IMG/VR virus record: IMGVR_UViG_3300036766_000194
Span: 124,001 to 188,000 of that record
Length of the DNA stretch: 64,000 bases
Reading direction: 5' to 3' (one strand)
Shown here: positions 1,375-54,422 of the stretch, piece after piece
Layout of the letters: the number at the start of each line of letters is the position of its first letter
Position numbering within the stretch: position 1 is the first letter of the stretch
Notes under the pieces: model-generated
Databases searched by the model: none
Seen by the model: the letters and a program-made list of their open reading frames with translations, nothing else
Told to the model about the DNA's origin: nothing
Translations under genes and position numbers: made by a program

Positions 1375-1402
1375 GACGGTACGCACAACCAGAATCGCTA
1401 AT

Positions 1403-1431
1403 TAACCTTTTTCAGAAAACTACAGTATTAT
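1403..1431 (+). promoter_or_regulatory. promoter of tRNA array 1 (TAACCT-N17-TATTAT); predicted +1 at the leader ATG
   Basis: matches a motif recurring about 10 times in the window; ATG lies 6 nt after the -10 box. Confidence 0.7.
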
Positions 1432-1437
1432 ATTAAC

Positions 1438-1521
1438 ATGAGACACATACTCTTATCATCGTATCTATCATCCAGTAGTTTGCTTACTGGATCCGAGCCG
1501 ATGAGAGGGTCTGTGGAATAA
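1438..1521 (+). CDS. attenuator leader peptide of tRNA array 1 (MRHILLSSYLSSSSLLTGSEPMRGSVE)
   Basis: codons 4-16 are all Ile(ATA)/Leu/Ser/Tyr codons read by the downstream tRNAs; overlaps the antiterminator strand. Confidence 0.8.
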   Translation: MRHILLSSYLSSSSLLTGSEPMRGSVE

Positions 1522-1545
1522 AGACAGACACTTAGAAGTAGAATC

Positions 1546-1584
1546 GGCCTCGGACCAAAGTACACGGTCCGAGGCTTTTGTTTT
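1546..1584 (+). terminator. intrinsic terminator (attenuator) before tRNA array 1
   Basis: 10-bp perfect stem GCCTCGGACC/GGTCCGAGGC followed by TTTTGTTTT; its 5' arm can instead pair with 1489-1502. Confidence 0.85.
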
Positions 1585-1597
1585 AGAAGTAAAGTTT

Positions 1598-1686
1598 GGA
1601 GCGGACGCCCTGTTGGAATGGGCACCTGTCTGTAAAACAGGAGTCCCCTGCGGATATTGTGGGTTCGAATCCCTCTCGCTCCACCA
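1598..1686 (+). tRNA. tRNA-Tyr(GTA)
   Basis: cloverleaf, CCTGT-CT GTA AA-ACAGG, long variable arm, CCA end. Confidence 0.92.
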
Positions 1687-1698
1687 AGTTTTATCTTT

Positions 1699-1784
1699 GC
1701 GCGAGTGGTGGAATGGCAGACACGCTGTCCTCAGAAGGCAGTCCTCGAAAGAGGGTGGAGGTTCAAATCCTCTCTTGCGCACCA
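1699..1784 (+). tRNA. tRNA-Leu(CAG)
   Basis: cloverleaf, long variable arm, A73, CCA. Confidence 0.93.
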
Positions 1785-1786
1785 AT

Positions 1787-1873
1787 GCCGAAGTGGCGGA
1801 ACTAGGCAGACGCGGCTGGCTCAAACCCAGTTGGTTAACAGCCATGGGGGTTCAAATCCCTCCTTCGGTACCA
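1787..1873 (+). tRNA. tRNA-Leu(CAA)
   Basis: cloverleaf, long variable arm, CCA. Confidence 0.93.
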
Positions 1874-1942
1874 AGTTTTTGGAGTTTACTGTGGTTTAGT
1901 TTAGAAAGGAGTAAACTAGGATAAACTCAGTAACTAGTTTGT

Positions 1943-2029
1943 GCGGGTATGGCGGAACTGGCAGACGCGTTGGACTTAAAATCCAATGGCCGCAAGGCCG
2001 TGGGGGATCGTGGCCCTCTACCCGTACCA
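1943..2029 (+). tRNA. tRNA-Leu(TAA)
   Basis: cloverleaf, atypical T-loop ATCGTGG, CCA. Confidence 0.88.
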
Positions 2030-2042
2030 AAGTTTTGATTTT

Positions 2043-2126
2043 CGGCGAGTGGCGTAATGGCAGCCGCGCTAGACTTAGAATCTAGTCCTTAAATGGGTGT
2101 GGGTTCGAATCCCTCCTCGCCGACCA
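2043..2126 (+). tRNA. tRNA-Leu(TAG)
   Basis: CTAGA-CT TAG AA-TCTAG, CCA. Confidence 0.92.
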
Positions 2127-2132
2127 AAATTT

Positions 2133-2218
2133 GCACCTGTGCCGGAACTGGCATACGGGCACGGCTGAGAACCGTGGAGCGAAAGCTCTTGTGAGTTCGA
2201 CTCTCACCAGGTGCACCA
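2133..2218 (+). tRNA. tRNA-Leu(GAG)
   Basis: CACGG-CT GAG AA-CCGTG, CCA. Confidence 0.93.
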
Positions 2219-2223
2219 ATATT

Positions 2224-2275
2224 CGCTAAGGATGGCGGAACTAGGCAGACGCATCCTTTAGGAACCCCAGTAGCG
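2224..2275 (+). pseudogene. tRNA-Leu D-arm remnant or tRNA-like hairpin
   Basis: 2233-2252 is identical to the D-arm region of Leu(CAA) at 1794-1813; no anticodon loop or T-arm. Confidence 0.5.
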
Positions 2276-2337
2276 AGTCCGGTTTTGATATGTGATATTA
2301 TATAGAGGAAGGGGTTTCTATATAAGATAACCTATAT

Positions 2338-2427
2338 GGGAAGTTGGCAGAGTGGCCTATTGTGCTGGTTTGCTAAACCAGAATGCTCGAAAGGGCATCA
2401 GAGGTTCGAATCCTCTACTTCCCGCCA
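2338..2427 (+). tRNA. tRNA-Ser(GCT)
   Basis: cloverleaf, long variable arm, G73, CCA. Confidence 0.93.
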
Positions 2428-2431
2428 ATTT

Positions 2432-2521
2432 GGACGGTTGACAGAGTGGCCTATTGTGCACGCCTGGAAAGCGTGATTACCCGAAAGGGTAACGAGTGTT
2501 CGAATCACTCACCGTCCGCCA
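2432..2521 (+). tRNA. tRNA-Ser(GGA)
   Basis: cloverleaf, long variable arm, G73, CCA. Confidence 0.93.
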
Positions 2522-2525
2522 GATT

Positions 2526-2675
2526 ATGAATCTAAAATGCAAGTGTGGTGAGGACAAATGGGAAGTTGTACAGAAAGCTGATGGTAAGAAGACTCTTACC
2601 TGCTTGTCTTGTGGTGCTGAGATTTTAATTTTCTTACTACTTCATCCTGAAAATAAGGATGTGAAGTGGGAGTAA
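2526..2675 (+). CDS. small Zn-ribbon protein (49 aa) inside tRNA array 1
   Basis: MNLKCKCGEDKW...TCLSCG; fills the tRNA spacer almost exactly. Confidence 0.55.
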   Translation: MNLKCKCGEDKWEVVQKADGKKTLTCLSCGAEILIFLLLHPENKDVKWE

Positions 2676-2682
2676 AGAGTTT

Positions 2683-2769
2683 GGAAGATGTGAGCGATGG
2701 CCGCTCGCTCGTCTCGAAAACGAGTCAAGCCGAAAGGCATAGGGTGTTCGATTCACCCATCTTCCGCCA
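2683..2769 (+). tRNA. tRNA-Ser(CGA)
   Basis: CTCGT-CT CGA AA-ACGAG, long variable arm, CCA; atypical D-arm. Confidence 0.88.
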
Positions 2770-2772
2770 AAT

Positions 2773-2855
2773 GGAAAGATCTGCCGACGGCAAAGGCAAT
2801 CTGTCTTGAAAACAGACGCACCGAAAGGTGCACGGTTCGACTCCGTATCTTTCCT
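2773..2855 (+). tRNA. tRNA-Ser(TGA), no encoded CCA
   Basis: TCTGT-CT TGA AA-ACAGA, long variable arm, acceptor stem GGAAAGA/TCTTTCC. Confidence 0.82.
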
Positions 2856-2873
2856 CATTAGTGAACTTTCTAT

Positions 2874-3194
2874 ATGGGTATAAAGTTCACAGTGTACAAA
2901 ACAACGAATCTTAAGAATGCCAAATTCTACCTTGGCTCTCATAAGACCGTTAATCCGAACGATAGCTATCTGGGTTCGGGTACACTTATCCTACGGGCGA
3001 TAGCCAAGTATGGAGAAGAGAACTTCAAAAAAGAAGTTCTCTTCGTATACGATAACGCTGAGAAAGCATTTAAGAAAGAATTTGAATTGGTAGAGGCTGA
3101 GAAGCAGGATAAACTCTGCTATAATTTAAGGCAGGGCGGCAGCGGTGGATTTGGGTCTTTGGTCGAAAGGACAATTTATTCTTATCTTGCGTGA
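2874..3194 (+). mobile_element. GIY-YIG (Seg-like) homing endonuclease, truncated
   Basis: VYKTTN..N.KFYLGSH, YLGSG and YNL..GG motifs; ends right after the catalytic domain; sits in a tRNA array. Confidence 0.8.
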
Positions 3195-3233
3195 AGATGG
3201 AAAACCTGATTTACAACTCGCTGAGTAGATTTC

Positions 3234-3322
3234 GCTGATGACCGTTGGTACGGGGAACCGCCTTATAAGCGGTCGCTCTAGATTAGAGCTTCTTTAGGGT
3301 TCGATTCCCTACGTCAGCACCA
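3234..3322 (+). tRNA. tRNA-Ile(TAT) with long variable arm
   Basis: acceptor GCTGATG/CGTCAGC-A-CCA, ACCGC-CT TAT AA-GCGGT, variable arm GCTCTA-gat-TAGAGC, T-loop TTCGATT. Confidence 0.85.
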
Positions 3323-10197: not shown

Positions 10198-11352
10198 TTA
10201 TTCTACTTTAAATCCACCCATACGGGCAGCTTCCTTAGCTGTTAAGGCAGATCCTTCTAAGCCGCTCTTAATAGGGGCAGGTGCTGATGAGGTTATTTTA
10301 TACCCGCTCTTCGCCGCTCCTGCTGCTCCAGGTAGTTTAGGATCTCTTATACAAAACATCTCATACAGGAACAAGGGAAGCACATCGGAGGATAGAGTTT
10401 GACTCTGACTCCACTTCATAAAAAATTCTGTCATAGTGGGAACGTTGCCAAACTGAGTCAGAACATCACTCAGTTCATCGGTAAATACGCTCCGAGCATA
10501 ATAGCCAAACATAGCCTCAATGATCTTAGCAGGTTCATAGACGCGGGCTAGTCCATCTATAGCGAATATGGCTTCTTTCTGCTTCTTTTGTAGGACTAAC
10601 GTAAATAAGTCTACTACTCCATCTTCTAGGGTTGTCTCAAGTTGAGATTTCACCAGTTCAACCGTTACATTTCCTAGGGCTGCAATTATATCTAACATCT
10701 TTACCGCATCACGCACTTTGCCCTTAGAGGCACGTGCTATAGCCCTGAGTGCTTCTAGCTCATACGTTACACCATTCTCTACCGATACTGCCGAGAGCAG
10801 CCCGAGAATAGTCTCATCAGCCACTTTAGCAAACCGTATGCGACAACTGCGACTCTTTATCGTGCCTGGGATCTTTTCAGGAGAATTGGTTATGAATATG
10901 AAAATGGCGTCAGTATCAGCAGCTTCTAAGGGTTTTAGATAGACGTCAAAGGCTTCCCGACTAAGACGATGAGCTTCGTCAATCATAGTCACTCGTCTTT
11001 TTCCTAAAATAGGAAGGGATATTCCTACTTCAAGGATATTTCTTGCTTGTTCTACCCCAGAATTTGATGCGGCGTCAACTTCACGGAAATCAGGATGTTG
11101 GTCAATACCATTGGTATCTATTAGATTACAGCTTTCACACTTTCCACAACCAAGAGGATCACTTCCTGTACACATAAGAGCACGGCTGTGGATATATGCG
11201 GTGGTGGTTTTACCGACACCCCGAATACCTTCAAATATGAACCCTCGTAATAGGAACTTATTGAATTTGAGTAACGCCTGTAGAACTTTTATGGCGCGGG
11301 GTTGCCCTACTACTCCATTCCAGTCTTGAGGTCGTTTAGTTATCAGGCTCAT
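10198..11352 (-). CDS. dnaX: DNA polymerase III gamma/tau-like clamp loader
   Basis: RP..W..VVGQ, GIRGVGKTT, C..GCGKCESC, EVDAAS, IDEAH, TIKSRS. Confidence 0.9.
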   Translation of the reverse strand: MSLITKRPQDWNGVVGQPRAIKVLQALLKFNKFLLRGFIFEGIRGVGKTTTAYIHSRALMCTGSDPLGCGKCESCNLIDTNGIDQHPDFREVDAASNSGVEQARNILEVGISLPILGKRRVTMIDEAHRLSREAFDVYLKPLEAADTDAIFIFITNSPEKIPGTIKSRSCRIRFAKVADETILGLLSAVSVENGVTYELEALRAIARASKGKVRDAVKMLDIIAALGNVTVELVKSQLETTLEDGVVDLFTLVLQKKQKEAIFAIDGLARVYEPAKIIEAMFGYYARSVFTDELSDVLTQFGNVPTMTEFFMKWSQSQTLSSDVLPLFLYEMFCIRDPKLPGAAGAAKSGYKITSSAPAPIKSGLEGSALTAKEAARMGGFKVE

Positions 11353-18661: not shown

Positions 18662-18899
18662 TTAACCCCTCTAATTAGAGTTGAAAATTACAGGGTTTAT
18701 GGTAAGGTCATCCATATACGTCGTAACTCGTTTCATTCTTCTTTTTTAGCATCTTCACGAACTCTTTTAATCAGAAGAGCTAAAGATTGAATTTCATACT
18801 CATCATCGGGACAATCGGGACTAAAGTCCCTCCACCAATCTCTAGCTGTGTTCCATTCATAATCAGAAACAGCATTTCTCATATGTTCGGGAAGTTTCA

Positions 18900-20240
18900 T
18901 CACGCTGGACCAAATTTAGGATTACATTCTAAACAATCGCATCCCTCAGAATGACTATCACTGAACCCTATTGGGAGGAGGTCTTTATTATAAATATCAT
19001 AGGTACCTTCAAATTGCTTACTCTCCAGGGGTTTTTGAATAGCAGCAATTTTCCTAACAAAGTCTCTAAATATTTCCTCTGTAACAACAAAGCCAGGAGC
19101 CTCAAATATATGAGCCAGAAGATCCGCCACCCCTGGATCCTTATCTTCTTCAGCCGCTTGATACAACATGAACAAGTCCTTCTTTAGGGGATTACTAAGA
19201 ATCTCATTCACTAACACGGCATGAGGATCCATAGTTACTTCAGCTTCGGGTTCAGTGTAGCGCGTAATAGGTTGGCGAGTGCCATTCTTCAAAGCGGTCA
19301 CTACTTCCTGAGAACGTTCTACAGAATTCCTCAATTGTTCTGCTTCACGCTCCTCGTAAGGACGTTTATTAGCCGACGCAATATATCCCACAACCGAAGT
19401 GAATATGGCTATCTTATTGTCTGGGTAATTTCCTTGATAGACCATTTGTAGAACAGCATCGCGTTCAAACTCGGTGAGAGTCCAATTCTCTTCTTCAGCC
19501 CACTTAGTAATTTCCATCTTCTCAAGTATTCTTGCTGCTGTAACGCGGAGCAAGGTGCGAAAGGTTAGAGCCTTTTCCAATAAGTCTACTTCTTGCCAGA
19601 CTATGGGATTATGCTCAGTGACCTCCACCGTAGTTATATCCTCTACTACAACTCCCGTATCAATATGAATCCACTCTTGTATATTGGCTACTTCGGCATA
19701 GTCTACAATCAATCCTAGCAGGTCACACTTTATACACGCAAAGATAGACTTAGCTAGTTTATTGGGGAGACCTGCTTCCTTAGAGAAATAATTAGGACAT
19801 TCCTGTTTAATAAATTGCCAGATGGTTACGTCGGGTTGGGTAAAGAACATCTTAGGATCATAACCCTCTTTGCGTACGACTTCAGCAAAGTGGCGACCGT
19901 TTTCAAGGATCTCAGCATATTGTTCAAGGTCTCCTGTAGAAGAACTGAACACTCCACTAGTCGTAACAAACTGCTTACCATAGCGGGCATCTCCCCCAAA
20001 TAGTGCTTTACGGTCATACACAAAGCAACATTCAATTTCACGAAAGCGAGGATCGTGAACCATCTCCCAAGTAGGACCCAGCGTCTTTACAACTCCAATG
20101 TGTTCGTCAAATAGATACCCGGTAATGATTTGACAATACTCATATTCTTCCTGAGTAACCTCCTGATCATCAGCCTGGATACGATATTCAAACTTGGCAT
20201 CATCTACTAACCCAAACAATCCTCGTAACTTACGATCCAT
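18900..20240 (-). CDS. hypothetical protein (446 aa)
   Basis: long ORF, GAGG SD, C-terminal HSEGCDCLEC. Confidence 0.7.
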   Translation of the reverse strand: MDRKLRGLFGLVDDAKFEYRIQADDQEVTQEEYEYCQIITGYLFDEHIGVVKTLGPTWEMVHDPRFREIECCFVYDRKALFGGDARYGKQFVTTSGVFSSSTGDLEQYAEILENGRHFAEVVRKEGYDPKMFFTQPDVTIWQFIKQECPNYFSKEAGLPNKLAKSIFACIKCDLLGLIVDYAEVANIQEWIHIDTGVVVEDITTVEVTEHNPIVWQEVDLLEKALTFRTLLRVTAARILEKMEITKWAEEENWTLTEFERDAVLQMVYQGNYPDNKIAIFTSVVGYIASANKRPYEEREAEQLRNSVERSQEVVTALKNGTRQPITRYTEPEAEVTMDPHAVLVNEILSNPLKKDLFMLYQAAEEDKDPGVADLLAHIFEAPGFVVTEEIFRDFVRKIAAIQKPLESKQFEGTYDIYNKDLLPIGFSDSHSEGCDCLECNPKFGPA

Positions 20241-23752: not shown

Positions 23753-23829
23753 TGGGGTGTAGGACGGGTCTCGAACCCGCTTTAACCGGATTCACAGTCC
23801 GGCGCGTCACCTGTTTCGCCTCCTACACC
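23753..23829 (-). tRNA. tRNA-His(GTG)
   Basis: encoded G-1:C73, CCGGA-CT GTG AA-TCCGG, CCA. Confidence 0.92.
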
Positions 23830-23831
23830 AT

Positions 23832-23993
23832 CGTTTAGTGCTTCCTTGTAAAAGGCAGTTTCAGTCCATTTCTTTTTCAAATGGGCATGAACAGCCATAT
23901 CAGTTACTCCTAGTTTCCTAGCACACGGTCCACCATTGTTGTTTTCTCATGAACCCTTCAATGCCCTTTGTAAGAGATACTGAAAGTCACGAA
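23832..23993 (-). ncRNA. candidate rod-shaped RNA between tRNA-Trp and tRNA-His
   Basis: nested long-range helices TTTCAGT/ACTGAAA and CAAAGGGCAT/ATGCCCATTTG. Confidence 0.45.
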
Positions 23994-23995
23994 TG

Positions 23996-24067
23996 CAGGA
24001 TGGGAGGGACTCGAACCCCCGTAAACGGTTTTGGAGACCGTTGTCCTGGCCGCTGAACGACCATCCT
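23996..24067 (-). tRNA. tRNA-Trp(CCA), no encoded CCA end
   Basis: ACGGT-CT CCA AA-ACCGT, A1-U72, G73. Confidence 0.9.
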
Positions 24068-24073
24068 ATTAGT

Positions 24074-24246
24074 CTTACCGCCTGAGCGGTAAGCTGGGTT
24101 CTATTGATTTATGAGATTAAGTGAGTCGGTGGGAACTACGTTGACCCTCAACCTCGAAATTGCGAACCTCAGCTTACCGCCAGAAACACGAGCCTTACGC
24201 TCTATGCCACTGTCGCTTCGCTTCGCTCCGATTTCGTTTCGTTGAG
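24074..24246 (-). promoter_or_regulatory. attenuator-like alternative helices before tRNA array 2
   Basis: 1:2 (24231-24246 with 24147-24160), 2:3 (24164-24180 with 24086-24101), 3:4 (24086-24093 with 24074-24081). Confidence 0.7.
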
Positions 24247-24251
24247 TTCAT
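24195..24251 (-). CDS. leader peptide of tRNA array 2 (MNSTKRNRSEAKRQWHRA)
   Basis: 13 of 17 codons after the ATG are read by tRNAs of the downstream array; follows the promoter motif. Confidence 0.78.
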   Translation of the reverse strand: MNSTKRNRSEAKRQWHRA

Positions 24252-24269
24252 TTTATTGCTCTCGTATAT

Positions 24270-24298
24270 AGAATACGGGATATCTTTCAAAAAGGTTA
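24270..24298 (-). promoter_or_regulatory. promoter of tRNA array 2 (TAACCT-N17-TATTCT)
   Basis: same motif and spacing as the array-1 promoter. Confidence 0.7.
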
Positions 24299-24648
24299 AT
24301 TAGCGATTTTCTTCTTAACAATGCCTTCTTTAACCCATTTCTTGTGACATTCGTTGATAACTTTAATTATCAGTTTTTCCATCTTCTTATTCTTCGTCAT
24401 GATACATCCAAGGCAGTGTCGCGATCAGTCGGTCTCGTTCGCTCCTCTGGCGCAGGCGCTTCGGTCCCGGTTGGCTCTTCTGGGACCGACTCAAACTGTA
24501 TGTGAACGTCCTCCTCAAAAGCATGCCCATTCTGCCAACCCAACTGCCCAGAGAATTTTTGTTGAATTCTCTATTTTACGATGGCGCATCCAATAGAGAA
24601 GACCTATCGTAGCCACCACCCCAAGAACAACGATTATAAAGGTAAGCA

Positions 24649-29245: not shown

Positions 29246-29328
29246 GTTACCCTATTTCAGAAATTATGAAAGAAATATCTTTTCTTTCTAAGACTTTTTC
29301 CCAGATACTTAACATCCCTACCAGGTGC

Positions 29329-29832
29329 CTACTGACTCTTCGGCTTGTAAAGATGAATGACATCGGGATCGACATCGTAAAAGTTTGCGGGCGCATCACC
29401 ATTGTCATTTCCCGTAAACAAAAAAGATTCCTTATTGAAAATAAAATTTCGGAGACTTTCATCTGAAGAAAAGACCTCTTGTGACGTGCCTGCGCTCTGG
29501 TGGTCAACATAGCTACCATGATTCTGACTCTGGTCTGTAGAAATCCGGCTAATGACGCCTTTCACACCTGTCTGTTCTTTGATAACCCTTTCCAACATCT
29601 CCAGATTATCGGGGTTCGTTTGCTGATCAACCGCGCAGTAATTGGCCTTTGTCAAGGCATCGTTGAAGCGGTTCCACTCCCATCCAAATTCTCCCCCAAG
29701 CAGAACAATGTAACCGTCTGAGTCAGGAACTAGGGAAGTATCCAGAACTTCCGTAGAGTCCAGTTCTTTGACGCTGATACTGTGCGTGCTGGAACTGTTT
29801 GTTTCAAAAATGTTTGGTCTTACTTTTTTCAT
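29329..29832 (-). CDS. conserved phage protein (FETNSSSTHS motif)
   Basis: R..FETNSSSTHS and YVDHQS motifs; lies next to the radical SAM gene. Confidence 0.7.
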   Translation of the reverse strand: MKKVRPNIFETNSSSTHSISVKELDSTEVLDTSLVPDSDGYIVLLGGEFGWEWNRFNDALTKANYCAVDQQTNPDNLEMLERVIKEQTGVKGVISRISTDQSQNHGSYVDHQSAGTSQEVFSSDESLRNFIFNKESFLFTGNDNGDAPANFYDVDPDVIHLYKPKSQ

Positions 29833-34263: not shown

Positions 34264-34671
34264 TCATTTAGGGATAACACGTTTTTCTAACTTCTCCATT
34301 GCTGAATGATCAATAATTTCCTCGTTCGTATCTACTACTCCCAATACCCATAGTAATACGCCAATTGCGGGATATTTCCGGAAAAGTATATGCTTATCGA
34401 AAAGTTCATCACGAAATTGTTGGTAGAGTTCTTCTTTGGTATAAATAGAAACAAATTCTTCATCGCGGATGCATAATTCTGGATTATAAGAATGACATTT
34501 TTTACACCCAGTCACTTCATTTCCATGTTGAGTAGCAAATTGACAATTAAAAGGACAAGGACGAGAGTTCTTTTTTAAGAACTTTCTACGCGCTCTATGT
34601 ATGACTTCACGACAACGAGCTATGATGTCCTGTTTAGAGCGAAGTTCTATATGTTGAGATGATATATCCAC
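34264..34671 (-). CDS. Cys-rich hypothetical protein
   Basis: CPFNC...CKKC...C. Confidence 0.55.
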   Translation of the reverse strand: MDISSQHIELRSKQDIIARCREVIHRARRKFLKKNSRPCPFNCQFATQHGNEVTGCKKCHSYNPELCIRDEEFVSIYTKEELYQQFRDELFDKHILFRKYPAIGVLLWVLGVVDTNEEIIDHSAMEKLEKRVIPK

Positions 34672-34721
34672 ATTACTTATTACTTCCTAATTCGAGGTTT
34701 GTCTTCATTTCGTTTTATGGC

Positions 34722-34952
34722 TTACGCTTGAACAATGAGATCTTCAGGAGAAGAAGCGTAGGTGGAAAGAACCGAAATCTGGAAATTCTGGCTGTACTTA
34801 CGAATTGCGTAAGAAAGGGCAGTTGTCCCTCTATGTTTCAAAGCATAGTTAACATGCTGTTTCCAACGATGCTCCGCATGAGTTCCCTGCCATTTACCAA
34901 TATAGACTTTGTTGTTAATCTTATTGCGAATCAGATATACTAACATTTTCAA
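34722..34952 (-). pseudogene. GIY-YIG endonuclease N-terminal fragment
   Basis: LVYLIRNKINNKVYIG...RWKQH...AIRKY; stops before the catalytic E and YN motifs. Confidence 0.75.
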
Positions 34953-51425: not shown

Positions 51426-54422
51426 TTAGCGACCCCGACGATGGAAAGGATTCCGTGTCACCGAAACTCCCGGAAGTACTACATTCTGTTGTATCTTACG
51501 CTGACGTTCAAGTAATTTAATACCCCGCATTGGTATTCCAGAGACATCCGTTATCATACCCGGTGGATGAGCTTGACGTTCTTGCATAGCAAAACTTAAT
51601 CCTGTGGGGTCCATCACCAAACGACCTTCTCCCTGGAGATACTCACTCACCTGCCAAGCCACAAGTGCTACGGCGTCACACATATCGTCATGAGAACCCT
51701 TTTCTTCAGGAGCTTTTACACGAAGCATATACTTACTAGCCACAGTTGCTTCTACTTGTTTAATTTCACTCAAGAATTTAGGGACATTCGGAAATCTTGT
51801 TCGTCCATTATCAATGTATCCTTTAAGAGAAAAGTACATTGTAGAATTTATAGCTGGAGTTAAATGCACAAGCTCCATACCTTCTATCCCGTTAATCTGT
51901 AGCAACTGAACCAACATAGTTCCACCGTGTTGGTCCGTTACTCCTTTAAAGCAGGGCATTATATTGTGCATGGCTTTAAGCCAGGAAACAATGTCTAAGA
52001 GAGGAAGTTCGGTATAGTTGACATACTTGTCCCCTCCTAAGCCTATGTCTTCTACACCTGGTCCCTCAAATTTCTCTCCTACCATCATCCTATCCACATA
52101 GTCATACACTAATTCTATGCCAACATTGTTTCTAAATTCAAGATGACCTATGGCAAGAGCAGTACCATCATGTAGCATACCCAAGTCCAGTCCCCAGAAA
52201 TACTGACGTCCTAGCATTTGGATAGGATCAAACTGAATGGTATTCATACGCTCTTCATCTACGCATACATTAAGTTGTGCACTCTTAACATAAGTTTCAG
52301 AAGAATCTAGGAACTCTCCTCCATATTCCGCCCGCCAAGTGATAGAAGATGTAGCATATTTCTGATGAAGAAATGGAGAGTCAGCATCGGGCCACATTTC
52401 AGCTGTAGAGCAACGTAGTGTAAAGATGCCCGATGAAATTCCTCTCTCCAAAGCGAGCTTGTGTAGCTCATACATCTTACCTACACGTTGCCAGGGAGAA
52501 GAGATAGACAAGATAAGAGACTCTCTACGTCCCTTACCAGCATCGGCCTTAAAACGGGCCGTAGCCGGGGTTGCCGACTCATATATTTCGTCAGAACTTG
52601 AACCCTTAGCCGCTCGAAAATGAGCAAATTCATCCAAAGCCAAGAATAGTGAAGAAGGTCCGCGAAGTGCGTTAGTCGTACAGGGATAGGAAGCTACTCT
52701 AATTGTAGGAGTAATATCACGTTTCTGGCGGTCTGCTTCGCTTACAAAAGCCATTTCGCTATTTGAATTGACTCGGATGTAGGGAGAAAAGAATGGTGAA
52801 TGATTTACACGTTCACGGAGTTTATCATAGAGACGGTTGCTACCTTCATCGTCTTGAGCCATGAATGTGAAGTCAATAGGTGAACCCGGCATTAAACCAT
52901 AATGTTCTTGAGGAGAACGAATATTGAGTAGACGATAGAGAGCATATCCTCCAATGGCCGATACCAATTCCGAATTGTGGGTGACGTTGAAGTTCTTCCC
53001 AAACAAAAACAGACCGTCAGGAGTGTCTACCGCGATACAGCGGACTAGCGTCTCGCCAGCGTACTCCACCTCTGTAATCGTACGATAATTCTGCAAATCA
53101 CGCACTTTTTTTGGCACACTCGCCAATTTTCGTTTAAGACGAAAAACAGGTAAAGTAGCCGTCCATAAAACAGAGTAGTAGGCACCACAGTCTTTACCAT
53201 ATAAAGTAGCTCGGCCCTCTTTCCAGTAGGGTTTTAACCCAAGCGAAGCGGCTAGGTGGTACGCGCCCTCAGACAAGTTACGATTGGTGTTAGCAAATTC
53301 ACACTGCCCGTCTTCTGCACAGTATCCATCTGTATCCATCAACCCCTGTAGCAAGGCTAACCGCTGTTCAGTGGAAGCATATAGGTAGTCCTCAGGAATG
53401 TGCTTGTTTTTCCAAAGTTTCATTTTTCGCAACGGGAGGCCGAATATGCTCCAGGAAAAGTTCTTAGCGTGCTTTCCCTGCTTCCATTTGAAACCTGCTG
53501 CGGTGAAATGCTTTAGAATTTCTGGGGCATCATCGGGGTGGCTGTAGATGTAGCCATCACACTTGCTACCATCCCCTAGCCACACCCCCAAGCAATAAGG
53601 ATCCAGGGGTAACTGCTTTTCTTCAAACTCAACGGGAGCGGTGATTCGGATGGTGTGATTGCGATCTTTGCCATGCATCAATGTAGATTTAATTTCTTCC
53701 GTGGTCCTAACCGTCCCTGTAATACCGGAACGGTCTATGAAATTCGCCCGGCCCCGCTTCGCTCCCTTTCCACGTTGAGTTTTAGTGATAGGCATGCGGA
53801 GATTACGACGATCTAACATTGTAAAGGTCTTCCAAAGATGTTCAGGATGTGCTAAGGTGTAAGTTCCATCGTCAAAACTAACCCTATAAACCTTTGACCA
53901 AAACGGAGCAAAGGCTTCCTTTACCTTGATAGCTTTACCATTAGGAGAAAGTATTGTGTCACCCATTTCTAAATCACCCATCCGTTTGAAGCCAGAGGGC
54001 GTAGGGACTACTTCTTCAACACTGAGAGCTTTTCCACCACGGCGGCCTGCAAATAACGCCGCCTCATTAAACCCATATTCGGGGATATCCTGCCAATCGG
54101 CTATGTTACAACGACCCTCTTCGTAAAAGTAGTTTAATAACTGTGCTTCATCGTCAAATTCATATAGAATTTGATCACGAAACTTGTTCCAAACCACTGC
54201 TTTTGGGTGCCCAGGCATTTCCGGGCGATAGTCAAAAGGTATGCCAAAGAAACAGCGAATACATAAACGCTGTAAAGGTGACATTACAAGATTAAATCCC
54301 TGGGGAGACTCCACAAAGTCTAGGGCATTTAATATGCTAACTGTCTCGCCAATAGATTGATCGACAAGTTTACCTAATAGAGAAGCCTGAGATTTATGGC
54401 TAAATTTTTGGCTTTGTGACAT
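51426..54422 (-). CDS. terL: terminase large subunit containing an intein
   Basis: Walker A GRRGGK/S, Walker B ALDEFAH, nuclease GLDLG...D and HDDMCDA. Confidence 0.93.
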   Translation of the reverse strand: MSQSQKFSHKSQASLLGKLVDQSIGETVSILNALDFVESPQGFNLVMSPLQRLCIRCFFGIPFDYRPEMPGHPKAVVWNKFRDQILYEFDDEAQLLNYFYEEGRCNIADWQDIPEYGFNEAALFAGRRGGKALSVEEVVPTPSGFKRMGDLEMGDTILSPNGKAIKVKEAFAPFWSKVYRVSFDDGTYTLAHPEHLWKTFTMLDRRNLRMPITKTQRGKGAKRGRANFIDRSGITGTVRTTEEIKSTLMHGKDRNHTIRITAPVEFEEKQLPLDPYCLGVWLGDGSKCDGYIYSHPDDAPEILKHFTAAGFKWKQGKHAKNFSWSIFGLPLRKMKLWKNKHIPEDYLYASTEQRLALLQGLMDTDGYCAEDGQCEFANTNRNLSEGAYHLAASLGLKPYWKEGRATLYGKDCGAYYSVLWTATLPVFRLKRKLASVPKKVRDLQNYRTITEVEYAGETLVRCIAVDTPDGLFLFGKNFNVTHNSELVSAIGGYALYRLLNIRSPQEHYGLMPGSPIDFTFMAQDDEGSNRLYDKLRERVNHSPFFSPYIRVNSNSEMAFVSEADRQKRDITPTIRVASYPCTTNALRGPSSLFLALDEFAHFRAAKGSSSDEIYESATPATARFKADAGKGRRESLILSISSPWQRVGKMYELHKLALERGISSGIFTLRCSTAEMWPDADSPFLHQKYATSSITWRAEYGGEFLDSSETYVKSAQLNVCVDEERMNTIQFDPIQMLGRQYFWGLDLGMLHDGTALAIGHLEFRNNVGIELVYDYVDRMMVGEKFEGPGVEDIGLGGDKYVNYTELPLLDIVSWLKAMHNIMPCFKGVTDQHGGTMLVQLLQINGIEGMELVHLTPAINSTMYFSLKGYIDNGRTRFPNVPKFLSEIKQVEATVASKYMLRVKAPEEKGSHDDMCDAVALVAWQVSEYLQGEGRLVMDPTGLSFAMQERQAHPPGMITDVSGIPMRGIKLLERQRKIQQNVVLPGVSVTRNPFHRRGR
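52974..54029 (-). mobile_element. class-3 intein (352 aa) with LAGLIDADG endonuclease
   Basis: starts ALS, block B HPEHLW, LGVWLGDG and LQGLMDTDG, block F VRCIAV, ends VTHN/S. Confidence 0.92.

Follow-up and report, generated by a model that had tools for sequence, protein, structure and literature searches.

The minus strand of a 64-kb stretch of DNA (here called the window), part of a 299,875-bp contig from a huge phage, carries a tRNA array preceded by a short open reading frame. The array, here called array 2, runs from 24067 to 22347 (minus strand) and holds 13 tRNA genes with 11 distinct anticodons: Trp-CCA, His-GTG, Lys-TTT, Arg-ACG, Lys-CTT, Ala-TGC, Asn-GTT (twice), Gln-CTG, Arg-CCG, Arg-ACG, Arg-CCT, and Arg-TCT. 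ARAGORN finds them all, and Rfam finds all 13 above the gathering score. The ORF that precedes them extends from an ATG at 24251-24249 to a TAA at 24197-24195, beginning about 12 nt after the predicted transcription start and ending 127 nt before tRNA-Trp. It encodes the 18-residue peptide MNSTKRNRSEAKRQWHRA. A weak Shine-Dalgarno-like sequence, only GAGAG, ends 7 nt upstream of the ATG, while most genes of this phage have a clearer one.

The array promoter is assigned to 24308-24261 (minus strand). Here, a 20-nt motif, AATCGCTAATTAACCTTTTT (24308-24289), contains a -35-like TTAACC (24299-24294), which is followed by an 18-nt spacer and a -10-like TATTCT (24275-24270). The start site is inferred to lie at about 24263. 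Within the motif, CTAATTAACCTTTTT occurs exactly twice in the window, at 1398-1412 (plus strand) and at 24303-24289 (minus strand), against 0.4 occurrences expected even with two mismatches allowed. The first of these sites lies ahead of a second tRNA array, array 1, and the longer form TCGCTAATTAA-N19-GTATT occurs only at these two sites in the entire source contig. A scan for sigma-70 consensus promoters did not flag this promoter, because its -35 and -10 elements are non-consensus. The motif does, however, align with consensus TTGACA-N17-TATTAT promoters at the same position in two more distant huge phages (L073 and L075), and with promoters having TATCAT or TACTAT as the -10 in a third (L076). 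Because it aligns with the -35 region of these promoters, a reading of the motif as a transcribed boxA-like element was rejected.

The sister element ahead of array 1 lies at 1393-1584 (plus strand). It has the same promoter motif, a leader ORF at 1438-1521 that encodes MRHILLSSYLSSSSLLTGSEPMRGSVE, and a canonical terminator at 1547-1584. Fifteen of the 26 codons of this ORF are read by array 1, covering 10 of its 11 anticodons.

The remarkable feature of the ORF ahead of array 2 is its choice of codons. With standard wobble rules, 13 of the 17 sense codons that follow the ATG are readable by array 2, covering 10 of its 11 anticodons; only CCT, which reads AGG, is missing. As 24% of the codons in the long ORFs of the phage are readable by the array, the binomial probability of 13 or more matches in 17 is 8e-6. 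Coverage of 10 or more anticodons occurred in 0 of 200,000 random 17-codon ORFs drawn from the codon usage of the phage. An empirical comparison gives a similar picture. Of about 127,900 17-codon stretches in the six frames of the window, coverage of 10 occurs in six; five of these overlap this ORF, and one lies inside a long ORF at 41763-41713. Only the ORF ahead of array 2 combines at least 13 matches with coverage of 10. The leader also avoids the Arg and Ala codons that the phage prefers, using rare ones instead. Further, the seven internal spacers of the two arrays hold no codon-matched ORF, and the ORF between tRNA-Trp and tRNA-His is not significant. Both of the ORFs that lead arrays are matched.

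The RNA that contains this ORF can adopt two mutually exclusive folds that share one strand. In the first (structure I, -40.1 kcal/mol over 24247-24145), leader codons at 24246-24200 (segment 1) pair with a strand at 24182-24145 (segment 2), with the 5' part of the leader pairing with 24166-24147. This fold is seen in snapshots of co-transcriptional folding. Its apical hairpin (24207-24185, -8.4 kcal/mol) holds the TAA stop codon in its loop and is followed by GUGUUUCU; it is a candidate pause hairpin, a function inferred by analogy with the trp 1:2 hairpin. In the second fold (structure II, -39.1 kcal/mol over 24182-24086), segment 2 pairs instead with segment 3 (24139-24086), where 24180-24164 pairs over 11+5 bp with 24101-24086. 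Structure II is, in turn, excluded by an 8-bp hairpin (the 3:4 hairpin, 24093-24086 with 24081-24074, -11.9 kcal/mol) having the sequence CUUACCGC-UCAG-GCGGUAAG. This hairpin is followed by ACUAAU, without a U-tract, and ends 6 nt before tRNA-Trp.

When the 3:4 hairpin is included, the full leader is bistable, with its two states at -57.6 and -57.1 kcal/mol. The overall fold has z=-2.8. Structure I depends on the order of the codons. Shuffling codon order gives z=-4.0, with 0 of 500 shuffled sequences as stable, and the same test gives z=-6.2, -3.4, and -4.7 in three related phages (L023, L024, and L072, respectively). Support from covariation is thin, as it comes from four sequences in two lineages, with two compensatory pairs in structure II and none in structure I. 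RNAalifold analysis is too weak to be proof, because there are too few divergent sequences and these carry indels.

These results confirm the features that the preliminary description reported for this region. They also support its interpretation, that of a second leader unrelated in sequence to that of array 1, yet following the same codon-matching logic. Its warning that the output might not be classical intrinsic termination likewise stands.

Further support comes from other phages. The ORF, its promoter, and its position are conserved in four related metagenomic phages, L023, L024, L072, and L021, whose neighboring ATPase is 70-78% identical. In L023, L024, and L072 the ORF reads M(F/T)(T/S)TKRNRSTAKRQWHRA. 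Between these and the window the two Lys codons are swapped (AAA..AAG in the window against AAG..AAA), so both codons are kept. L021 has a peptide that begins MNSKAQNRNQWQRANHKH, in which the order of residues is different but the set is the same, with N, K, A, Q, R, W, and H filling 17 of its first 18 codons. In L021, segment 2 lies inside the ORF, giving a textbook 1:2, 2:3, 3:4 layout that ends in the terminator CCCGCTA..TAGCGGG+TTTTTGTTGT. L023, L024, and L072, in contrast, lack segment 4 entirely. No convincing complementarity was seen, by eye, that would let tRNA-Trp supply it.

More distant huge phages (L073-L076, ATPase 56-60% identical, source contigs of about 97-465 kb) have a promoter, a leader, and an intrinsic terminator ahead of arrays for other amino acids. 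The leaders ahead of Tyr/Leu arrays contain M..LSLALLYTLLSG.., while those ahead of Pro/Met/Phe arrays contain M..MRP.PMFRPCMPTM... When leaders were scored against arrays in a cross-matrix, each leader matched its own array type only. Leader 2 of the window scored 13/17 against its own type and 0-2/17 against others. The Pro/Met/Phe leaders scored 7-9/22 against their own type and 1-2/22 against Tyr/Leu(/Ser) arrays; they scored 4-5/22 against Trp/His/Lys/Arg-type arrays, because these leaders carry three Arg codons. The published huge phage LR756500.1 has MKAISVHIIHIWEHLLEEVNINIM followed by a terminator ahead of a His-Glu-Val-Trp array. Phage T5 served as a negative control; the same scan found no codon-matched leader in its tRNA cluster.

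Not every search for relatives was productive, of course. A near-identity search of the array region against deposited phages found no match, and a distant blastn search of the same region returned only generic tRNA hits. Scans for the promoter motif found only the source contig and chance hits in IMG/VR, only strain-level copies (L062 and L064, the latter a strain copy of the array 1 element) in JGI metagenomes, and one chance hit having no tRNAs in GTDB genomes. A protein search of IMG/VR with the ATPase found only the source contig itself, and the neighboring 170-aa protein has no homologues. P0006 and two of the P0002 contigs end before the array, while LR756508 and LR756511 have no tRNAs near the ATPase homologue.

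The best explanation is that the region 24308-24068 (minus strand) is a ribosome-mediated attenuator for tRNA array 2, a reading to which a probability of about 0.75 might be assigned. Here, a sigma-70-like promoter with a phage-specific upstream motif would start an RNA whose first feature is a "test track," an ORF in which nearly every tRNA species of the array is represented once or twice by a codon that it reads. These are often codons that the phage itself rarely uses (CGA, CGG, AGA, GCG). If ribosomes read the ORF quickly and leave, segment 1 would re-pair with segment 2, leaving segment 3 free or, in this phage, locked into the small 3:4 hairpin. This would be the OFF state. If a ribosome stalls on any hungry codon, segment 1 would be occupied, segment 2 would pair with segment 3 in the anti-terminator-like structure II, and RNA polymerase would continue into the tRNA genes. 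The result would be negative feedback, where tRNAs are made when decoding capacity for exactly their codons is limiting. That the ORF is translated, and that stalling selects structure II, are of course inferred.

The step by which the OFF state would stop transcription is also inferred. As no hairpin in the window is followed by a U-tract, and as three relatives lack the last hairpin altogether, the step that actually reduces tRNA output is not visible in the sequence. The most likely output is Rho-dependent or factor-assisted termination using segment 3, which is C-rich and G-poor (18 C and 6 G of 54 nt, in the top 0.3% of 54-nt stretches on this strand; 18-19 C and 4-5 G in L023, L024, and L072). 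This is only weak evidence for a Rho site, since the composition follows in part from being the complement of a G-rich strand. Further, the stop codon ends 14 nt before segment 2. A terminating ribosome therefore cannot mask segment 2 as it does in trp or his, and the model needs refolding of the RNA after ribosome release and probably a polymerase pause. Each codon occurs only once or twice, whereas classical leaders use runs of one codon, and sensitivity to any single tRNA may be low. Equilibrium folding with a masked ribosome footprint rarely shows the anti-terminators of the canonical examples, but this is expected, because such switches are kinetic.

Alternative explanations are all unlikely. 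In one, the long helices would be elements for RNA processing or stability, such as RNase III sites that release or protect the array precursor, with the ORF incidental or merely modulating cleavage. Both structures are indeed long (roughly 35-40 bp), imperfect helices next to a tRNA precursor, and no terminator is present in four of the five lineages. This does not explain, however, the codon match, its conservation with permuted order in L021, or the array-specific leaders found elsewhere. Nor would cutting a leader from a tRNA precursor by itself change the yield of tRNA.

About as improbable is a reversed logic, or a general sensor of translation competence, where structure II would be the terminator, structure I the anti-terminator, and the array would be ON when translation is efficient. 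This view draws on L023, L024, and L072, where the only hairpin followed by any U-rich stretch (AUCUUU or GUCUUU) is structure II. The window, however, has no U residues after structure II. By alignment, segments 2 and 3 correspond to segment 2 and the 5' terminator arm of L021, where 2:3 is clearly the anti-terminator. All of the canonical examples (L021, leader 1, L073-L076, and LR756500) are built so that stalling gives read-through, and positive feedback would not explain why the codons match the array.

Still less likely is the view that the ORF encodes a functional small basic peptide, perhaps an arginine-rich RNA-binding peptide of the lambda-N type that acts in trans or on the adjacent hairpins in cis, whose composition only looks codon-matched. 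The peptide is basic, contains a Trp (KRNRSEAKRQWHRA), and may resemble arginine-rich motifs, and its residues 5-18 are nearly invariant in four lineages. Yet this invariance is explained by pairing with segment 2. Further, the L021 peptide has the same composition but a different sequence and only two Arg, and leader 1 and the Tyr/Leu, Pro/Met/Phe, and His/Glu/Val/Trp leaders are not basic, although each matches its own array. Last, that the match is an artefact of a purine-rich, low-complexity stretch with GAAGCGAAGCGA-like repetition is effectively refuted, despite the one other locus in the window that reaches coverage of 10, by a P of about 1e-5 or lower at the one relevant position, by conservation that retains both Lys codons, and by recurrence of the same logic in at least nine other leaders of four array types.

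Control of this kind is well known for amino acid operons. Leader-peptide attenuators of biosynthetic operons (trpL, hisL, leuL, thrL, ilvL, pheL) and of pheST (pheM) in enterobacteria have a short ORF at the 5' end of the transcript enriched in regulatory codons, mutually exclusive 1:2, 2:3, and 3:4 helices, a stop codon near a possible pause hairpin, and a fold decided by ribosome position. L021, leader 1, and the L073-L076 leaders add the hairpin and U-tract, and so match the whole scheme. In the window, the U-tract is absent and segment 2 lies beyond the stop codon. Here, the element is phage-encoded, the ORF samples about ten different codons for seven amino acids rather than a run of one, and the regulated genes are tRNA genes rather than biosynthetic or synthetase genes, so the sensor and the product are the same molecules.

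In leaders that control Rho-dependent termination (mgtL-mgtA and mgtP-mgtCBR of Salmonella, tnaC-tnaA of E. coli), translation of a short ORF selects between folds or ribosome positions that expose or hide an unstructured C-rich stretch, and no intrinsic terminator is needed. This would explain the missing U-tract and the composition of segment 3, although there is no sequence similarity, and the quantity sensed would be a panel of tRNAs rather than proline, Mg2+, or tryptophan. T-box riboswitches are similar in function, as tRNA status controls read-through into translation-related genes by a choice between anti-terminator and terminator. They bind one uncharged tRNA directly through a specifier codon and the T-box sequence, however, with no ORF and no ribosome. 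No T-box, known leader, riboswitch, or other Rfam family matches here; only tRNA hits appear in 23800-24450 at E<=10 and in the whole window at the gathering score. The tRNA clusters of phages T4 and T5 have their own promoters, interspersed small ORFs, and homing endonucleases. As far as could be found in full-text searches aimed at this question and in the huge-phage genome paper, leader-peptide attenuation of tRNA genes has not been described.

A broader hypothesis is possible, but tentative. Huge phages might generally place their tRNA arrays under demand-driven control, with each array preceded by a multi-codon leader that reads, codon by codon, whether the infected cell can still decode. 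Shortages could arise from the pool of the host itself or from cleavage of tRNA by host anticodon-nuclease defenses, and the phage would then switch on exactly the replacement tRNAs needed. This would be a previously undescribed class of regulon and a sensor arm of phage counter-defense.

How phages regulate the dozens of tRNA genes that they carry is essentially unknown, and these genes are usually treated as constitutive supplements to codon usage. A leader whose codons mirror the anticodons of the array behind it implies a direct feedback from decoding capacity to tRNA supply. The codons in the leader should predict which tRNAs are co-regulated, and the pattern of promoter, short matched ORF, switch or terminator, and tRNA array is a signature that can be sought in huge-phage genomes. 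The version in the window, with its balanced two-state switch but no U-tract, is also a good case for studying non-canonical termination outputs. Such a leader could act as a natural multi-input sensor, an OR gate over about ten tRNA species, with a plausible link to host defenses that target tRNA.

The window lies at about bases 124,001-188,000 of IMGVR_UViG_3300036766_000194, an IMG/VR contig of 299,875 bp. No close relative exists among deposited phages. The window carries 24 tRNA genes, which are organized in two arrays. Array 1 (+ strand, 1598-3322) holds Tyr, five Leu, four Ser, and Ile-UAU. Array 2 (- strand, 24067-22347) holds Trp, His, Lys-UUU, Arg-ACG, Lys-CUU, Ala-UGC, two Asn, Gln-CUG, Arg-CCG, Arg-ACG, Arg-CCU, and Arg-UCU; all 13 of these are confirmed by Rfam.

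Protein genes lie inside array 1, at 2874-3194 (+) and 2526-2675 (+). One is a 106-aa ORF with a weak SegE-type GIY-YIG hit (E=6e-5, below the Pfam cut-off), which is probably a homing endonuclease, while the other is a 49-aa ORF with four cysteines. Elsewhere in the window, a 998-aa protein (51426-54422, minus strand) has an internal LAGLIDADG_3 hit at residues 352-403, suggesting an intein or an inserted homing endonuclease. The spacer between tRNA-Leu-GAG and tRNA-Ser-GCU (2226-2262, plus strand) holds a fragment that resembles the 5' half of the neighbouring Leu tRNAs (GGATGGCGGAACTAGGCAGACGCATCC), probably a tRNA pseudogene remnant. In array 2, a perfect 30-nt palindrome, AGGAGATGATAGTCGCGACTATCATCTCCT, lies in the spacer between the two tRNA-Asn genes (23085-23056, minus strand). 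Other internal spacers (23579-23430, 22979-22813) also look structured, but have no tRNA or Rfam match.

Reading the minus strand upstream of tRNA-Trp, the first feature is the motif AATCGCTAATTAACCTTTTT (24308-24289), followed by a -10-like TATTCT (24275-24270). An ORF then runs from its ATG to a TAA stop (24251-24195), followed by 127 nt of structured RNA and then by tRNA-Trp itself. The features given in the preliminary description are confirmed in the sequence. The -10 region (24275-24263) is embedded in an inverted repeat, GTAT-TCTAT-ATAC, that is conserved at the same position in four related loci discussed below (L021, L023, L024 and L072). This could be an operator as well as a promoter element.

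With standard wobble rules, 13 of the 17 codons of this ORF are readable by array 2, and a maximum matching covers 10 of its 11 anticodons; AGG/CCU is the only one missing. In the long ORFs of the window, 24% of codons are readable by this array, which gives a binomial P of 8e-6. None of 200,000 random ORFs drawn from the phage's codon usage reached a coverage of 10. The real sequence was also scanned exhaustively. Among all roughly 127,900 17-codon windows in six frames, coverage of 10 occurs six times; five of these overlap this ORF and one lies inside a long gene. No other window combines at least 13 matches with a coverage of 10. The only other stretches that reach a coverage of 10 for array 1 and array 2 codons, respectively, are 33783-33733 (-) and 41763-41713 (-). 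Both lie inside long ORFs and have no promoter motif or adjacent tRNA, and are therefore treated as chance.

As an internal control, every gap of at least 100 nt that precedes a tRNA in the window was scanned. Here, only the two array-leading ORFs are matched (P = 4e-5 and 9e-6), while the seven internal spacers are not. The promoter motif occurs exactly twice in the window, and its extended form occurs only at these two places in the whole 300-kb contig. Further, within the readable set, the leader prefers codons that the phage rarely uses. It has CGA twice (7% of Arg codons), CGG (9%), AGA (16%), and no CGT (44%), and it has GCG twice (14% of Ala codons).

The second occurrence of the promoter motif belongs to the leader of array 1 (leader 1, 1393-1584, plus strand). 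Its ORF (1438-1521) has 13 consecutive Ile/Leu/Ser/Tyr codons that match array 1. The ATG lies only 6 nt after the -10-like TATTAT, so the transcript may be leaderless. A canonical terminator follows at 1547-1584, and GGATCCGAGCCGAT inside the ORF can pair with its 5' arm.

Relatives of the array 2 leader (leader 2) were sought through the AAA ATPase encoded about 900 bp upstream, which has many homologues in huge-phage contigs. Four contigs whose ATPase is 70-78% identical reach a syntenic array that starts with tRNA-Trp. All have the same promoter (TCGCTAATTA..N..GTATTCTATATAC) and a short ORF. The leader peptide is MFTTKRNRSTAKRQWHRA in locus L023, MFSTKRNRSTAKRQWHRA in L024, MTSTKRNRSTAKRQWHRA in L072, and MNSKAQNRNQWQRANHKHAVVAGLCSDGWDY in L021. 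Two details argue for selection on codon content rather than on the peptide. First, the two Lys codons are swapped between the window (AAA...AAG) and L023, L024 and L072 (AAG...AAA), so that both codons are retained. Second, the residue order is different in L021. Seventeen of its first 18 codons nevertheless belong to the same seven amino acids, and both codons of the His, Lys, Asn and Gln boxes are present.

L021 also has a textbook terminator just before tRNA-Trp (CCCGCTA-loop-TAGCGGG followed by TTTTTGTTGT). Its segment 2 lies inside the ORF and pairs with the early regulatory codons. By alignment, segments 2 and 3 of the window correspond to segment 2 and the 5' terminator arm of L021. 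The leader and switch are nearly identical between L072 (4197-4271) and L023 (7882-7956), yet the tRNA-Trp genes that follow are quite different sequences. The first tRNA seems to have been replaced behind a conserved leader.

The same logic is seen at other arrays. Loci L073-L076 come from contigs of about 97-465 kb whose ATPase is 56-60% identical. Within 21 kb, L073, L075 and L076 carry two more units having the form of a TTGACA-N17-TAT..T promoter, a short ORF, an intrinsic terminator, and a tRNA array; L074 has the same units, but with GGACA and TGGACA in place of TTGACA. One unit precedes Tyr/Leu arrays and has the leader M..LSLALLYTLLSGGGSGVFNG. The other precedes Pro/Met/Phe arrays and has the leader MN.MRP.PMFRPCMPTMRGVAVL. 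A cross-matrix of 14 leaders against 14 arrays is block-diagonal. Leader 2 of the window scores 13/17 on its own array and 0-2/17 on Tyr/Leu(/Ser) or Pro/Met/Phe arrays. The Pro/Met/Phe leaders score 7-9/22 on their own arrays and 1-2/22 on Tyr/Leu(/Ser) arrays, but 4-5/22 on Trp/His/Lys/Arg-type arrays, because they carry three Arg codons. The 5' untranslated regions of leaders of different array types share a small hairpin motif, GCTGCTGGAC..GTTACCCAG, nested in a longer stem (L072 3976-4022; L073 4130-4170; L074 5515-5555). L074 carries a compensatory pair here (CCGG/CCGG in place of CTGG/CCAG). The motif may be a protein-binding or processing element common to tRNA-array transcripts.

A much more distant example comes from LR756500.1, a published 462-kb huge phage whose ATPase is 32% identical. 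It has MKAISVHIIHIWEHLLEEVNINIM, matched to His/Glu/Val/Trp, plus a strong terminator 20-30 nt ahead of a His-Glu-Val-Trp(-Leu) array. It also has a Ser-rich ORF that ends 5 nt before two tRNA-Ser genes, and a tRNA with a CUA anticodon (amber suppressor-type). These features were noted at 10633-10800, 29255-29335 and 18898-18966 of the locus examined (the reverse complement of 88706-129617). Conversely, the same scan on the tRNA region of phage T5 (NC_005859) found nothing comparable. Its only hit was T5.070 (34627-34755), a Cys-rich, zinc-ribbon-like 42-aa ORF directly upstream of tRNA-Cys (5 of 41 codons are Cys, P=2e-4), probably a coincidence of a zinc-finger peptide. The pattern is therefore not a by-product of the method or of tRNA clusters in general.

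Folding of growing transcripts shows the order of events in the leader RNA of the window. Before the last strand is made, the whole ORF forms one long imperfect helix with 24182-24145. This is structure I, at -40.1 kcal/mol, with the stop codon in its apical loop. Once 24139-24086 is available, the same 24182-24145 strand can pair with it instead. This is structure II, at -39.1 kcal/mol, which includes the 16-bp helix noted in the preliminary description. When structure I holds, 24093-24086 pairs with 24081-24074 to give the 8-bp hairpin (-11.9 kcal/mol) that was also noted there. The two complete states are almost exactly balanced, at -57.6 and -57.1 kcal/mol.

Both long helices exist in L023, L024 and L072. 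Permuting the order of the leader's codons keeps the codon match but destroys structure I; the z-scores are -4.0, -6.2, -3.4 and -4.7, with 0-3 of 500 shuffles as stable as the native order. Compensatory changes are few (for example, GGTTC/GAACC against GGTTG/CAACC), because only two divergent lineages are available, and covariation is therefore treated as supportive rather than as proof. No Rfam family matches.

The architecture is that of a ribosome-mediated attenuator. Here, segment 1 is the regulatory codons, segment 2 is shared, and segment 3 chooses between segment 2 and segment 4. It is inferred that the ORF is translated and that a ribosome stalled on any hungry codon keeps segment 1 occupied, so that 2:3 (structure II) forms and the polymerase reads on. 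Fast translation and release would allow 1:2 (structure I) to form, leaving segment 3 free or in the 3:4 hairpin. This logic is unambiguous in L021, in leader 1, and in the L073-L076 leaders, where 3:4 is a real terminator. The reading of leader 2 as a codon-sensing regulatory leader is supported by statistics, internal controls and comparative evidence, and is assigned a probability of about 0.75. If it is correct, it is quite likely that stalling turns the array on.

How transcription is stopped in the window is open. Two classical features are missing; there is no U-tract, and the stop codon lies 14 nt before segment 2. In addition, L023, L024 and L072 have no segment 4. The most economical output is therefore Rho-dependent or factor-assisted termination, although this is only about as likely as not, even granting that the leader senses codons. 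In the OFF fold, a stretch of about 54 nt that is C-rich and G-poor is exposed (18 C and 6 G, in the top 0.3% of windows, with 18-19 C and 4-5 G in the relatives). This composition is, however, partly a consequence of complementarity. In this phage, the 3:4 hairpin may mainly lock segment 3 away from segment 2. Weak intrinsic termination is a less likely output, and some other output is also possible.

The element works like the trp, his, leu, thr, ilv, pheA and pheST leaders and, in its form lacking a U-tract, possibly like mgtL or tnaC. No report of such control over tRNA genes was found in the literature searched, where absence is not, of course, proof of novelty, and the huge-phage genome paper contains neither "leader" nor "attenuat". 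The element differs from these known leaders in what is regulated, which is tRNA genes; in what is sensed, which is a panel of about ten codons for seven amino acids, each present once or twice; and in where it sits, which is in a phage. It differs also in that the sensed molecules are the products as well, so that the loop is closed.
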